The notes under the pieces: generated by a model
What the model was told of the DNA's origin: nothing
The model's input: the letters and a program-made list of their open reading frames with translations, nothing else
Databases searched by the model: none
NCBI GenBank assembly: GCA_907165135.1
Contig: OU015568.1
Location: forward strand, 9,424,001-9,488,000
DNA length: 64,000 nucleotides
Direction of reading: 5' to 3'
DNA from: Oikopleura dioica
Lineage: Eukaryota; Animalia; Chordata
Made by a program: the position numbers and the translations under genes
In this document: positions 1-30,280 of the stretch, piece by piece
Numbering within the stretch: the stretch's first letter is position 1
How the letters are laid out: the number at the start of each line of letters is the position of its first letter

Positions 1-914
1 GTTCCTTAGAAACACTTTCTTTCTCGGCTCATTTTCTAGGGCTCATTTACATAACCCTCCTAAGAAACATTGACTCATCAAGAAGAAGTTGAAGGATCGT
101 TTAGTCCACGTCCGAATTGAACCACAATTGGCAGCTGTGCCGGAGCTGGTAATGCTCACCTTCTCGGGCGCCTTGCCCAGTCCTGGCGGTATAATTTTCT
201 CCCTTCTCATTTTTGATGAATCGACTCCAATTTCTCGCCGGCCTCTTTTCTGATAACTTATCCAAATATTCTCAATTGACGACGTGGGGCACTAGAATTT
301 CAAACCGCAAGTTTTGGGAGTTGTAATTTTATAAAATAAATATTAATCAAATTAGTACCTCCTAATTAAAGGGCCAATGATAATGCGTTTGGTGATCGGG
401 AGACCCTTAATTAATGAAAGAGTGACATTAATTAAAAGTTAATGCTTTTAGTGTTTATTGTCATTTCTCGCGAATTGACACTCACTGAGTGTCACCTATT
501 TAACGAAAATTTGACGATGATAAAAATGAAAGAGTACACGCATGGGGAAAGTGTTGATGCAAAAATAGGGATCTGACGTGGGAACGCGTGAGTGTTATCT
601 TTACTAAAGACACGATCTTGTTTAAGTCAAGCTGATTCGATTGGTTTGGAGGAGCTTCTTGTCATGGCTTGAAAATATTTTTTTTTATTTAAAAAGGCTT
701 ATTTTTAGAAGCCTGCATAAAGGCGTTATTTTATTGGCTTGAAATGTTGGTGGCGCTGTTCGTGCTTAATTTAGTATCTGATTGGTCGATAAATTCCGAA
801 TAAGATAATGTCGGTCGCTCAACCAATAAGATACCCAATAAAATTCAAACAGCGCTACCAATTATTTCATACAATGAAATTTCGTATTCGCATGAAATTT
901 TCAATCCTTGAAAG

Positions 915-2725
915 ACCCCATGGAGCTGTGCCAAAGAAACGGCCCAGGAATGTACGCTATTGAGGGACAATGCGAGCAGTACGTTCAGTGCTACGACTCT
1001 GCACTGATGGGTGGCCGCGGCGGGCGCGTCAAAAAGTGCTCCACTGGGCTGGTGTTCGACGCCGAGACCAAAGGCACGTGTTAAACATCCTCATTAAAAT
1101 TCTCAAATAATCGCTGCTCTAGTCTGCGACTTCGCCGAGAATGTTAAGGGTGCCTGTCACAACAACAAGCCCGCGTACAATAAGGGCGAGAAACCGAACG
1201 TCCCCGAAGAGGTAAGAGCTCTAGAATGACCTAAATGATGCCCTACTCAAAGCGCGCTTAGCATTTTTATCGAACAAAAGCCGCGCTCGATGTTTTATTT
1301 TCGATATTTTCGGGAAAAAGGGAAATCCGATTGACTTGCGATAAAAAATATTGAGCTCGGGGAAGAGTTAAGTAATTTTCAGATAAAAAATAACGAAACT
1401 TTTCAGGAAGAAATTCTCGAGGACCAGTGGATCAACGATGCGGACGAGTTTTGCAAACAAAATGGAGTGGGAACCCATCGCCATGCGAATGACTGCTCTG
1501 TTTTCTATGTGTAAGTTGTCAGCGATTTTAAGGGGGAAGACCACCATAAAACGAATTTTCGGCCGAAAAAATTAAATCAATTTTTAGATAAATACAAGAT
1601 TGAAATTATTTCTAGCTAAAAAAAAGGGTGCGCTAAAATCTTTGTTTTCTTATTTGTCTTTTTTTCGATTCGGTATTCTTCTATTTCATAACCCTTGTTC
1701 CAGCTTTACCTCAGTATTTTCTCCTACAAGTAGCGTCGTAATACAGCTGCAGCTAAAGTTGTCGCCTTTGATCTAAAATTACAAAAGAAGAAAAGGCGGA
1801 GATAAATGACATTATGTACGGTTAGCGAAAAAGATGCTTGTAGACAAGATTTTTCGGCTTCTGTTTTTTACGCGGTGCCGACAGATGCCAGATTAGATAA
1901 TCCTTTCGTTAAACGTGAGAGAGCTTTCTAAACATCGAGATAAAGTTATATTTCACCTTAACTAACCATGTCCCGAGTCCAGAATTTGAGAAATCGGCTA
2001 GAATTTGGGTCAAGATGGCTAATTTAAAGATTTCATGTTACCAAGCGAATCTACTTTCTAAGTCAGTTCCAAGGAAGATCGACTCGTTTGATTTAAAATA
2101 TAATTACTGCTTCGCGATTTCCGCAGAACATCCGGATCTACAGCCCTTTCGACAAACGTTGATGAGTTCCGACCAAAATATAAGCTATAAATTGAGGGAT
2201 TATTTTGACTTTCAACCAAGCAGCAAGAAATCAAAAAACTTTTCAAAGAAAAATGAATTTTAAAATCGTCTTTGAATCATGATTTTCATCCAAAAATCCT
2301 AAAAACAAAGCGCTTCTTGGGTCCGTGCTTCCGTCGATTACGCGTACTGCGGATTTTCAAGCTAACCATTCTTTGGTTAAAAATGACGAAATACGATTTT
2401 TCTTCTGTCAGCATTCAATGAAGAAAAATACCTATCATTTTCATCATTTTTAGTTGAGAAAGTCTTGTTTGTTTTTAAACAAACAGATTTTGACTTGAAT
2501 GCCACCTTGATAAAGTTTGTCTCTCGTTTCTAAATTCAAGCCCCTCCCAATATCATCATCATCGACTTGCATAAGTGTTGCTTTAGATGCCAGAGTTCCG
2601 GTCAATCCGACAAGTTCCACTGCCCCGATGGACTCGTCTACAACACCAAGGGTGGCTACTGCGACTGGGCAGACAACTTGGAGGACGGTTGCTTCACGCG
2701 AAATCTTTACTTGGTCGGCTATTAA
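915..2725 (+). CDS. Chitin-binding protein with two peritrophin-A/CBM14 domains; spliced, 5' end unresolved
   Basis: Exons ~915-1073, 1123-1211, 1407-1511 and 2587-2725 join in frame: CQRNGPGMYAIEGQCEQYVQC...CSTGLVFDAETKVCDF and CKQNGVGTHRHANDCSVFYVC...FHCPDGLVYNTKGGYCDW. Both show the six-Cys CBM14 pattern with CPxGLVF/Y. The first intron is GC-AG. Confidence 0.85.
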
Positions 2726-4240
2726 AAACATTTCTTTTATTAAAAAAATTATTCTCTTCTGAAAAAATAAATTGATTAAATTTTTGATCTTTTCGAACTC
2801 AAATCCGCCTAATTTTCTGTTTTCAATGAATCCAAAAATCCGAGGAAAGAGTTAATTAGCGTCAAAGAAAAAAGAAGTTCGGGGGAATCAATGAGGTCAT
2901 CACCTGAATATTTTAGCATGTTGAAATTCAAATATTTTGACAACGCTCAGTAAATTGCAGCCCTAAGAGGGAGAGAGCGCGGGGAATAGCTAAAGCGGGT
3001 TACTTCTCAAAATATTTTGGAATGGTACTTGCAGTTCATTTTGGAGCTTTTACGTTGCTAAATCATTTAGATTTCTAATGAAGCGAATATTTGGATAATC
3101 CAGTTTGAGGATTGGCGATTCTATCAGTCCTTAGGCAAGGGAATCCGCTATTTTATCAGCTCCCGCAAAGAAGCTGGATGAAATTGAATCAGAGTATTTT
3201 TCGTCGTCAACCCATGCTTGACGCTTGATGCGGTTACTGTGGCCGGCTGCGTGCGCGTCTGATCAAAGAAAGCTACTGAAATCTAAGTAAAAGGATTCGC
3301 AACTCCTGGCTTGATTCGATAATGTCAGGTTCAACGAATTTGGCAAGGAATGACTCTCACTGTCGGAATGACAAAATGCAGGCTTAGAAGGACGAATTGG
3401 CAGCGACTTTTTGAAATTGGCGGAATTGAAATGGGAACATTCTCCGCGGTCGATTTATGTCTAATTAAGGAAATGCTCGATCTTTCTCTACAAGATTTCT
3501 CTACCAAGGACAGCTCAGAACAGGAAAGAACTAAAAACAGGCAAGACAAATATCTGTGCTCTTGGTATGATTTTACGAGATTGCTAGAATTTCGAGAAGA
3601 AAATTATGCAAATTTTGGATGGAGATGAGGCAGCTTTTTTTTCTAAAAAACGCGTGTATTCACGAAAAGTTGAACACGAAACTTATTCAGTTTTTTTTTC
3701 TCTCACTAGCAGAAACACTCGCAAAGTATTTTCGACCATTGTTTAAAATTGGACTGTAGAAATGAATACTTTGCGAAATTCGAACAAAATTTCGTCCGAG
3801 CCTTATCCCTGTTTCTAAGTTTCTAATAAGAGCCCTTCGCTGTCAGTTTTTTTCTCAGGAGCAGATGTTTCATCCGCTGCCCCGCGAAAAAACAAAAAAT
3901 TTCAAAGCGAGTTTGTTTTTCAAGACGGGCGGCGCAGTCTATTAATCCTCCTGCTCTTTCTCTCCGGCTGAGACGCCTAATCCGACTTTCCCTTGAATTT
4001 CTCTCTCTCTCCCTGGGATTATGCGCTGCGGGTTATGTAAGAATGAAAATAGAGAGAATGAGAAAAAACGTGTTTTAGTTGATAAAGAGTTTATTCAAGC
4101 GTTATCACGTTTTGTACGAAGAAACGCTTCCGGTAGTAAAGTGCTTTCCCAAGTGTTGCGGATAATATTTCCGTGATTAAGAGTTACAAACTCAAGGAGC
4201 GCAGGACACGCTCTCGAAAGAGACCGAAGGCCTAAAGGAA

Positions 4241-5142
4241 TTAATCGAAGAGCTTGAGGATTTGGTCAGCAGTGAAATCGGCTCGGCAGGTCGGGCAGGT
4301 TTTCTGAGGAAGAGAGGAAAGGCACTGGAAGCAAGCCTTATGGCCACATGGAGAAACTGCTGCTTGAAGGTGGTCATCGTCGTATAATTCGAAGCAGACC
4401 TTGCATTTAAGCTTTTCGTTGTCTTCCATCGGTTTGTTCTCTTCTTCTGGAGTACCTTAAAAAGATAAATAAGTTTTGAACTTGCTTACTTGAATCATTT
4501 ACCTAAATCACTGTCATCATCTTTCAATGCCACCATGGCGAGTATGTAAGCCCGTTTTTGAACTTTCTTACGCCATATTTTCTTCGTGTTGAGTTCTTCA
4601 CTCGCCGCCTGCACATTTTTTTCTGCTAATTCGACTTGTTTTTTGGCCTCGACCAATTTTTTTTCAGCTTCTGTTACTTTGGATTTAGCAGAATCTTCCT
4701 CCATTTTTGACTCATAGAAATATCTGTTGACAACCGAAAAGCAGTCATAGTTTCCTATGTTTTATGTATTATGAACTGATATGACAATTATCGAACTCAC
4801 TTGTGTTATGAGTCCTTTCCAAAGCATTTTCACAGCAAGATCCAATCCAGTAGTCACGGTAAGATAATTCCTTGGCGCCACTATCCTCAAGACGCGATAG
4901 GGGAGCAGGACATTTGAATTTTGCGTCAGATTGCTTGAATGTGAATGTTCTCTCGGGAAATTTTGAAGAAGAGCATAATTCACATATTCGTTGACCATCA
5001 TATTCGGCGGTCGATTCTGTTAAACTAAAACTAATAAAAGATTTTTCATCTATACATACTGGTTGCAGAATTCACATTTTCGAAAAGAACCAATTGATGT
5101 TTCATAGTTAGGACTCGGACAAAAATTTGTAGGCGGGTCCAT
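4241..5142 (-). CDS. Putative E3 ligase: N-terminal CxxC...CxxC motif, coiled coil, C-terminal C3HC4 RING
   Basis: ATG at 5142. Three GT-AG introns (5059-5017, 4800-4755, 4502-4456; 43-47 nt) give one frame: MDPPTNFCPSPNY...KCEFCNQ...RICELC...KCPAP...GSCCENA...EAEKKLVEAKKQ...CKVC...CGHKACFQC...CPTC. Confidence 0.85.
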
Positions 5143-27197: not shown

Positions 27198-30100
27198 TTA
27201 AGGATTGGTTAGATAATCGCTTTTCGCATTATAATTTTTCACGTGAATACTTATAACAACGTAGAAACTCGCAACTACCACACAAATTGTCAGTAAAATA
27301 GCAAAAAGATGGTTAATCATTTTTCCATAAAATCTCCACGCAATTGTCCATTCATCTGGGTCCAAATCAGAGCTTTTTCGCATCTCAAGATTAATTGCCA
27401 GCCGTTCTTTGCTGTCCTCTACTTTTTGCTTCAATATCTTCAGAATAACTTCAGGGATGAGATATTTGTCACCGTGAATTTTTTCGTAAATTTTTGCTGA
27501 GAAAAGTGCAAACTTTGCTTTTCTCTGCGTGAAGCAGTACAATTGGTCGAATTGTTTTTCTTCTAACCATGCCGTTGCGAGTGGTCTCCGTTTGCCCAAG
27601 TCGCCGTTTGCCCAAGTCGCCGTCTGCCCAAGTCGCCGTTTGCCCAACTTGGGCAGACGGAGATCTTAGGCAAACGGCGATGTGATTTTTTTTTAATTGA
27701 TTGATCATAAAATGATAGAAGTAAGACAACAATTTCATTATCATCACTGAGTCTGCTGATTGCGGTCTGATTTGCAGAGACTTTCAGCCTGAAAGTTTCA
27801 GGTGAAAACAAGGGTTGTCCTGTTACGTCTTTTGAACGGTTATTAACCGTGGATTCTTGACAAGACCACCAATCAATGGTTATATACGATTTTCGAATAA
27901 ATTCTTGAGCACAAACACATAAATAAGAGACGAAATGAAAAATACAGTATCGTTGACTCTACGGAAGCTTTCCGAAATGACATCGTTTACATTGATAACG
28001 AGGAGCCTTCGTTATATATCATATATTATATATGGTCTAATTATGAGAGTCGCTAAATTCTCAATCAAAGTCCTAAATTAGGACTTCTAATTAGGACTCC
28101 TAATAAACAATTCCCGGAAGAGTTAATCAAGAAGAAAAAAGGCTCCGGTTTACTGAGACTGGATCGTAATTCGGTTGTCATAAGATTGTGCATGTGTTTG
28201 TAAATCAAGCCTGAGTACTCCTCTTCGCTGGGAGGAGGTTTTGGGAAGAGTTTCATCAGTTTTCCCCTTTTTCTCTTTTTCCTACTACTCACAATGACTG
28301 TTTTCTCTCAGTTTCAATCAGAAATAACTCCAAAAATAGAACGGACCGAAAATGAATCACGAGAAACAGTAATATGGGAAACCATCAATTCAACCAAGTT
28401 GGGGATTAGCGCTTGTGAGGACTCGGCGCATCCATCGTTTCCTCAATCTATGGGCCTCGGACGTAAAACTAGCGATTTAACTTTACCACTTAAAATCTAT
28501 CCTATCCTGCTGGTTTTGATTTCATAATTCAAGATGAGAAATTTCCCGATTTTAGTAATTATAAACTGAAATCAAAGTCTCCTTTGCGCTCATAAAAATC
28601 TGAAACCTTGAATTAATTTCTTTAAATTGAATTATGATTATATTTTCAATTTGATCGCCGTTTGCACAAGATCGCCGTTTGCCCAAGTCTCCGTCTACCC
28701 AAGTTGGGCAAACGGCGATCTTGGGCAGACGGCGACTTGGGCAAACGGCGACTTGGGCAAACGGAGACCACTCTGCCGTTGCACCTTAAAAAAGTTATTC
28801 GAGGAGTTTTTTTTATTAAGGACTTACTCAAGATAATCATACTGGCCACACTGGCGATTAAACTGATAATAAAAAGGATCAGTAATTGAGGTGCATTTGC
28901 AACTTCTTTGAAGACCGGGATGTTAGAAGAAAGAACATCCAAGTAGACAACGATGGTCAGTAGCATGGTGACCTGGTAGCTTATCGTCTCTCCACTGCTT
29001 ATGGGAATCCAGAGGCCAACACAGACGAGGATGTTTAGGCACACAATTGGTAGCAAAAGAGTTATTTCGTAAAATGCAATCTGCCGTTGGAGAAAAAATG
29101 AAGTTGATAGCTTTGAGAACTGCTGGTTTTTATTGCTAAAAACTTATTAAAAAAGATGATTTTTTTTCGTGACCACTTACTTTGAGCTCGTGGAGACAGA
29201 ATATTTAAATGCTTTCAAATTCCACTCTGGGTTTTCGTCGAAAAAGGCATTCTTGGCCACATTCAGGTCAGTTTCGTTGTACGAAGTTTCATTTTTCGTC
29301 CGAGAGATTTTTGGTTTTTGAACTTCATTCCACGTTCCAATTCGGAAATTGAGAAAAGTTGTGTCTAAGTTTGGCGTTGCCAAATCAATAGCGCACTCTT
29401 GAAGATCGAAAGGATAGAGCTTTTGAACGATCTCACAGGAAGTCTTGAGGCGCATTTTGATCTTCGTGGAGACGTCCCCGTTGGTTGTTATCTTTGCGTC
29501 GTAGTAGAAAATTATACCTTCATTGAGGTACTCGTCCAGGTTTACGATTTCGAACGGTGGTGTCCAGATCTTTTCGTAAGGAACGAAAATAGAGTAGATT
29601 TCGTTGTGTTCAGAAGCATTCCAGGTGAGACGCTCGTCAGTCCAGGAGAGATAGATGATTATTGTTGAATCCATCGAGCTACATTGTAAACTTTATAAAA
29701 TTGATTTCTGAGGAATTTTTTACCTTTCATGAATCATGACTTCATTAATGCTCTGAACTTCCATCGACGCCTCGATGTTCATCGGAGTAAATTTTGACGT
29801 ATAAATCAAATTTTCGAGCATTTCAAAAAGCTCATCCTCCATTTCATAAGATTCGCCGTTCTCTTCAATACACTTGCCTCCACTTGTTTTGTACGAAGCC
29901 AGCTCTGCACTGTCAAAGAAATAAAATGACTTGATATACTGCTGACAAGCGCGGGATCTTGTAAAATCAGCCGGGATTTCGGCTGAGTCGTAGATGCAGT
30001 AAAAGAAATCAGCAGCATGGGAGTTCTTTTCGTCTTCATCAAGAGATTCGAAGTCGTATTGGTCATCTTGGTAGTAGAAGTCGTAGATATTCGTTATCCA

Positions 30101-30280
30101 TCGTTCGCAGATCCCCGTAAAATCATCACTTTCCTCTAGAGGATCGTAAACCTCATTGATTGGCATCGTATCAGAGTCATAATTGTCCTCGTCCAAAAGG
30201 GTTCTTTTCAACCTTTCATTCGGCCACAAATCTCTCTGCCCAAATATCTCCGTGAAAAATAGAAAAAATAGAAAAATCAT
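27198..30280 (-). CDS. Divergent Cys-loop ligand-gated ion channel subunit (nAChR-like, cation-type, non-alpha), interrupted by a transposon at the end of M3
   Basis: Signal peptide; WTDERLTW; IWTPP; Cys-loop CEIVQKLYPFDLQEC; QRQIAFY pre-M1; M1-M2 linker PISSGETISYQVTMLL; M4 EWTIAWRFYGKMINHLFAILL. The frame is continuous once 27579-28773 plus one TSD copy is removed. Confidence 0.93.
27579..28773. mobile_element. 1195-bp Foldback/Mutator-type non-autonomous element (9-bp TSD TGCCGTTGC; tandem-repeat TIRs)
   Basis: Termini GAGTGGTCTCCG...CGGAGACCACTC. TSD at 27570-27578 and 28774-28782. TIRs of ~100-120 bp are built from a 16-bp unit, CGCCGTTTGCCCAAGT. Confidence 0.92.

Follow-up and report, generated by a model that had tools for sequence, protein, structure and literature searches.

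The locus described here raises the question of what becomes of a receptor gene when a transposon lies within the sequence that encodes one of its transmembrane segments. In the window (the whole 64-kb stretch of Oikopleura dioica DNA that was analysed), a Cys-loop receptor gene of four exons, on the minus strand, is interrupted in its last exon by a foldback-type element. The initial annotation had proposed that the gene could still be expressed by splicing across the element along three in-frame routes, referred to below as (a), (b) and (c), the allele being otherwise null. Whether the insertion point is coding or intronic, whether the insertion is fixed, and which product the interrupted gene may give are considered in turn.

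The receptor gene and the insertion site

The gene is laid out as follows.

30280-29724, minus strand: exon 1, signal peptide and long acidic N-terminal stretch
29678-29181, minus strand: exon 2, ligand-binding domain with the Cys-loop (Pfam PF02931, E 2e-22)
29135-28828, minus strand: exon 3, pre-M1, M1, M2 and most of M3
28827-28785, minus strand: native intron 3, 43 nt, GT-AG, phase 1, intact, conserved in paralogues
28784-28774, minus strand: first 11 nt of exon 4, the last exon, on the 5' side of the element
27569-27198, minus strand: remainder of exon 4, with the end of M3, the cytoplasmic loop, M4 and the stop codon (27200-27198)

The three introns measure 45, 45 and 43 nt and every one of them is of the GT-AG type. 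The reading frame is intact on either side of the element, and when the latter is removed together with one copy of its TSD, the gene reads as a single ORF of 1746 nt, that is 581 codons. The translation has the ligand-binding domain, the C-x13-C loop (CEIVQKLYPFDLQEC) and a putative M1–M4 layout like that of the nicotinic-type (alpha-7-like) Cys-loop subunits. The Pfam membrane-domain model gives no match on the pieces of the receptor searched separately; a paralogue with the same M1–M3 aligns to the M1–M3 of alpha-7 structures, and an M4-like hydrophobic stretch is present in the translation of the last exon. Contrary to the nicotinic-type subunits, the receptor belongs to a divergent, lineage-expanded family in which the N-terminal stretch is long and acidic; the squid chemotactile receptor CRB1 is among the PDB matches of one of its paralogues. 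About 120 residues of the region that precedes the ligand-binding domain (29783-30157) form an acidic, aromatic, cysteine-containing stretch with no match in Pfam.

The expansion of the family is visible in the ten relatives of the C-terminal piece that are found at E <= 1e-4, most of them short fragments. L003 (positions 1-4569) has a tandem pair of paralogous receptor genes, next to a connexin gene; this sequence is from the Okinawa assembly of Oikopleura dioica, GCA_907165135.1 (PMC11384887). A metagenome scan with the same C-terminal piece gave 88 pattern matches and no relative.

The insertion point is 11 nt inside the last exon, in the last turn of M3, which is the cytoplasmic end of this segment when judged from the paralogue aligned to the alpha-7 structures. 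The exon had first been described as the one that encodes M3: this is right for the last turn, but the preceding exon supplies most of M3. Likewise, the 43-nt intron that excision of the element was said to restore does exist, at 28827-28785, but it is intact whether the element is there or not.

The residues around the insertion point, Ser-Ala-Thr-Ala-Trp-Leu, had been taken as coding, and this assignment is now confirmed by the empty haplotype described below, by two orthologous contigs and by a paralogue. In L001, an ENA metagenome contig that carries a close orthologue, a 39-nt intron is followed by S-A-T-A-W-L-D-D-K, and the element is absent. In L002, a more distant orthologous contig, M-I-I-L-A-G-T-A-W-L-H-D-K is coded across the site, with no intron there. 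In the paralogue from L003, a phase-1 intron occupies the same place and T-V-S-L-W comes after it. The paralogues align over the site without a gap, in the form I-I-x-x-x-x-W (I-I-T-V-S-L-W-C-Q, for instance).

The element and its family

The element, its ends and the two copies of its TSD are the following.

27579-28773: foldback-type DNA transposon, non-autonomous, 1195 bp, defined by its TIRs, its TSD and the termini that it shares with other copies
27579-27681: left TIR, perfect over 54 nt (27579-27632) and about 103 nt in total, made of 16/17-nt units, four direct and then two inverted
28654-28773: right TIR, perfect over 54 nt (28720-28773), with the units in mirrored arrangement
28774-28782, minus strand: TSD copy 1, GCAACGGCA, 9 bp
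27570-27578, minus strand: TSD copy 2, GCAACGGCA, Ala-Thr-Ala, in frame

The 54-nt arms are 100% complementary (54/54), and the pairing reaches about 103 nt with one indel. The 38-nt tip occurs at two sites only in the window, when none is expected (100 shuffles), and the 12 copies of the 16-nt unit TCGCCGTTTGCCCAAG are all within the two ends of the element. The TSD corresponds exactly to the Ala-Thr-Ala codons in the frame of the 581-codon ORF, as had been noted at the outset, and the earlier description of a foldback-type DNA transposon with a 9-bp TSD, inserted in coding sequence rather than in a native intron, is retained; the TSD length of the family is that of one copy, the one in the window, checked at both ends.

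The element is a member of a cut-and-paste family that has many copies and was active recently. The reads of two DNA runs, X1 and X2, were placed on the window: in both, the depth over the interior of the element is several times that of the flanks, about fifty times in the repeat bins, and contigs from these runs with unrelated flanks end exactly at 27578/27579 and at 28773/28774. Variants with internal deletions also occur. L004, a contig of a different metagenome assembly, has a second copy that matches the 3' half of the element, with indels, until the homology ends exactly after ...CACTC. A scan of metagenome contigs with the 22-nt tip of the element gave no match.

The 9-bp TSD and the TIRs built of subrepeats fit a Foldback/Mutator-like element, a putative assignment in which the superfamily is unproven, because the family is known here without an autonomous partner or a transposase. 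Merlin elements likewise make TSDs of 8-9 bp. With the non-autonomous Foldback and Mutator-like (MULE) transposons, the element shares the 9-bp TSD, the long TIRs made of short tandem units, the lack of coding capacity and a multicopy family with internal-deletion derivatives. What sets it apart from them is that two inverted units are also present at each of its ends, which allows an end to fold on itself. Regarding coding capacity, the four ORFs inside or leaving the element have no match in Pfam and no transposase domain, and exact look-ups of the ORFs of the element or of its junctions matched no record.

Some features of the family are worth recording. The segment 28526-28610 is missing from most other copies (the depth at the corresponding joint is 354 in X1). 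A derivative reduced to the hairpin is present in X1 at about single-copy depth: it joins 27615 to 28729 with 9 other letters between them, which makes about 91 nt. The target site GCAACGGCA is similar to the core of the repeat unit of the element (GCAAACGGCGA); the only other flank seen, that of the L004 copy (TTTTCTCAT), has no likeness to this core, so the resemblance is probably a coincidence, as far as these two flanks can tell.

Filled and empty haplotypes

One contig from X1 joins 27569 directly to 28774, with 1204 nt left out, and nine letters at the joint fit either side, hence the empty allele has one copy of the TSD. The depth of this contig is 97.9 of about 218 (approximately 45%), and it is linked to SNPs of its own and to a 3-nt deletion in an intron. 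Letters like those of the window make up the other part, about 55% of the depth in X1, right up to the element. The letters of the carrier haplotype are, on the plus strand, G at 27506, T at 27516, G at 27546, A at 28819 and A at 28885; from these linked letters, and not from a contig that bridges the junction, we infer that the window-like haplotype of X1 carries the element. In X2, a 443-nt contig crosses the empty site, the whole depth of the flanks has the variant letters of the empty form, and only this form is seen.

The insertion is therefore polymorphic and not fixed: the assembled haplotype is filled, and the second haplotype of X1 is empty.

Comparison with the orthologues indicates that the receptor gene is under purifying selection. 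Over 173 codons that span the site, dN/dS is 0.05 with respect to L001, with a dS of 0.64; with respect to L002, also over codons that span the site, dN is 0.135 and dS is saturated. The SNPs point the same way: of the seven that were checked in the coding flanks, six are synonymous (three of the seven are linked to the empty-site contig of X1 and four are seen in X2 only).

Consequences of the insertion

Two kinds of outcome may be envisaged for the carrier haplotype. In the first, the element is translated until a stop codon is reached; in the second, it is removed from the transcript by splicing. The features to which the discussion refers are these.

28554-28552, minus strand: first in-frame stop on read-through, after 458 native and 73 element-encoded residues
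28770-28771, minus strand: GT of route (a), 2 nt inside the element, context aga/GTGGTC, a weak donor
27586-27587, minus strand: AG of route (a), 7 nt from the end of the element, context GGGCAAACGGAG/acc, with no pyrimidine tract
27563-27564, minus strand: AG of route (b), used with the donor at 28827
27497-27498, minus strand: AG of route (c), coding here; L002 has an intron at the same position

We argue that the first outcome is the one to be expected. A non-autonomous, foldback-type transposon that had recently transposed would have inserted into the final coding exon of a constrained receptor gene. In the carrier haplotype, intron 3 would be spliced normally, translation would proceed through Ser-Ala-Thr-Ala into 73 codons of the element and end at the stop, and the product would have neither the cytoplasmic loop nor M4. 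A subunit of a pentameric channel that lacks the cytoplasmic loop and M4 should be non-functional, and the allele would therefore be a recessive loss-of-function allele, sheltered by the intact one. The locus is thus most likely to be read as a young, polymorphic exonic insertion that abolishes the function of one allele while the other haplotype remains intact. The null allele, which had been proposed merely as a fallback, becomes the better reading, with the addition that it is polymorphic and has an intact partner haplotype. It resembles the classical insertional loss-of-function alleles, with no notable difference: a young insertion, an intact TSD, a premature stop in the element and an intact allele that segregates.

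It is important to note that the stop is in the last exon, so the mRNA might be spared from nonsense-mediated decay. The carrier allele could in that case give a truncated subunit, the effect of which would possibly be dominant. Exonic hits are presumably more likely in a compact genome, and insertions of this kind would be expected in a gene-dense genome that is sampled from one outbred individual.

Regarding the escape by splicing, the arithmetic of the initial annotation is confirmed: routes (a), (b) and (c) are all computed to be in frame, with a gain of 6 residues (EPLATA) and losses of 6 and 28 residues, respectively. That these routes are a special feature of the locus is not upheld. 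Around the element, 36 of the 110 GT-AG pairs, and 80 of the 253 Gn-AG pairs, are in frame and free of stops; this is one third of the nearby pairs, the rate expected by chance. In addition, route (a) depends on weak sites within a stem, while (b) and (c) skip an intact acceptor. Receptor exon words were not found in the older RNA assemblies, and among the raw RNA reads, one partial read falls on the receptor in X11 (bulk) and none in X8 (single-cell); these runs are perhaps from other lineages. Splicing that leaves no footprint was also considered and rejected, because none of the 10 boundary pairs that would remove exactly the element and one TSD copy ends in AG.

The alternative that deserves most attention is that the element is a nascent intron, spliced by route (a). 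Nine nt of the element and the 9-bp TSD would stay in the transcript and encode EPLATA at the border of M3 and the loop, and the receptor would work. The frame allows it, and in the predicted RNA fold (MFE -457 kcal/mol) the ends of the element form a stem of about 100 bp over the sites of route (a), which would bring them together. The rescue would hold at any site and in either orientation, since the ends are inverted and the footprint is 18 nt. Transposon-born introns are moreover discussed for larvaceans: these tunicates tolerate unusual transposon-derived introns, according to a review (PMC11282704), and Oikopleura is listed under intron gain by transposon insertion (PMC3443670).

On the other hand, the seven clear introns of the receptor gene, L001, L002 and L003 have GTAAG, GTAAA, GTAAT, GTATG or GTACA as donors and are T-rich before the AG, which is unlike the GTGGTC donor and the GGGCAAACGGAG acceptor of route (a). 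Both of these sites are buried in the perfect 54-bp duplex, in-frame pairs occur at the chance rate, the RNA runs checked gave no reads for such a product, and the allele is not fixed. We consider it unlikely that the carrier allele is rescued in this manner.

The same reasoning may be extended to the family. Its symmetrical tips have their GT at +3 and their AG at -8, which with the TSD would leave a constant in-frame footprint of 18 nt, and the family may in this sense be introner-like, which we regard as doubtful. If it were so, exonic insertions would be tolerated in the compact genome of a tunicate and could mature into new introns, and the receptor locus would be a case of intron birth caught before fixation. 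The element has features in common with the MITE-derived, non-canonical introns of Fritillaria borealis (PMC11282704) and with introner elements, namely inverted repeats and a TSD in a coding exon of a larvacean; as in introner-type introns, its tips are close to a GT and an AG, and the footprint would keep the reading frame. It is distinct from introner-type introns in its weak sites, its polymorphic insertion and the putative nature of its splicing, and the receptor's own introns, contrary to those of F. borealis, are ordinary GT-AG introns of 43-45 nt.

Another way to rescue the gene would be to skip the element from outside, with the donor at 28827 spliced to the AG at 27563 or to that at 27497, which would make the receptor 6 or 28 residues shorter. 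Both acceptors are in frame, the one at 27497 has a good pyrimidine tract, and the sister lineage represented by L002 has an intron there. However, the insertion leaves the native acceptor at 28785 as it was, at the usual intron length of 43-45 nt, whereas introns of 1265-1331 nt would be needed; the conserved W-L-x-x-K and the residues that follow, which are strongly constrained, would be lost, and there is no RNA support in the runs checked. Rescue by skipping is, on this balance, quite improbable.

That the element was misplaced in the assembly is very improbable: the short-read contigs are indeed shown without a bridge between flank and element, but the element is bordered by a perfect 9-bp TSD of a sequence with one copy in the empty allele, and the window-like letters persist at about 55% of the X1 depth up to the element. 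Last, the idea that the element is within a native intron and does not affect the gene, which has nothing more in its favor than splice-like sites nearby, is practically untenable: native splicing to 27497, the finding that would have made the element merely intronic, is not what the orthologues do, and the empty allele, L001, L002 and the paralogues all code through the site.

If the insertion is indeed a loss-of-function allele, the locus is a segregating transposon knockout for which both the filled and the empty allele are known, in a gene under strong purifying selection. The insertion can serve to mark ongoing transposon activity, and it also calls for caution, since broken genes can appear in an assembly that represents a single haplotype. 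If, conversely, carriers do splice the element out, this would be a live example of the birth of an intron from a DNA transposon in a chordate, a possibility that is directly testable because both alleles are in the same population.

Regarding the introns themselves, turnover between lineages is apparent in this part of the gene. L002 (positions 236-400, compared with 27490-28830 of the window) has lost intron 3, and its own 37-nt GT-AG intron falls precisely at the position that corresponds to the coding AG at 27497 of the window. In L002, the motif TTCAG appears twice, once where the exon ends and once where this lineage-specific intron ends.
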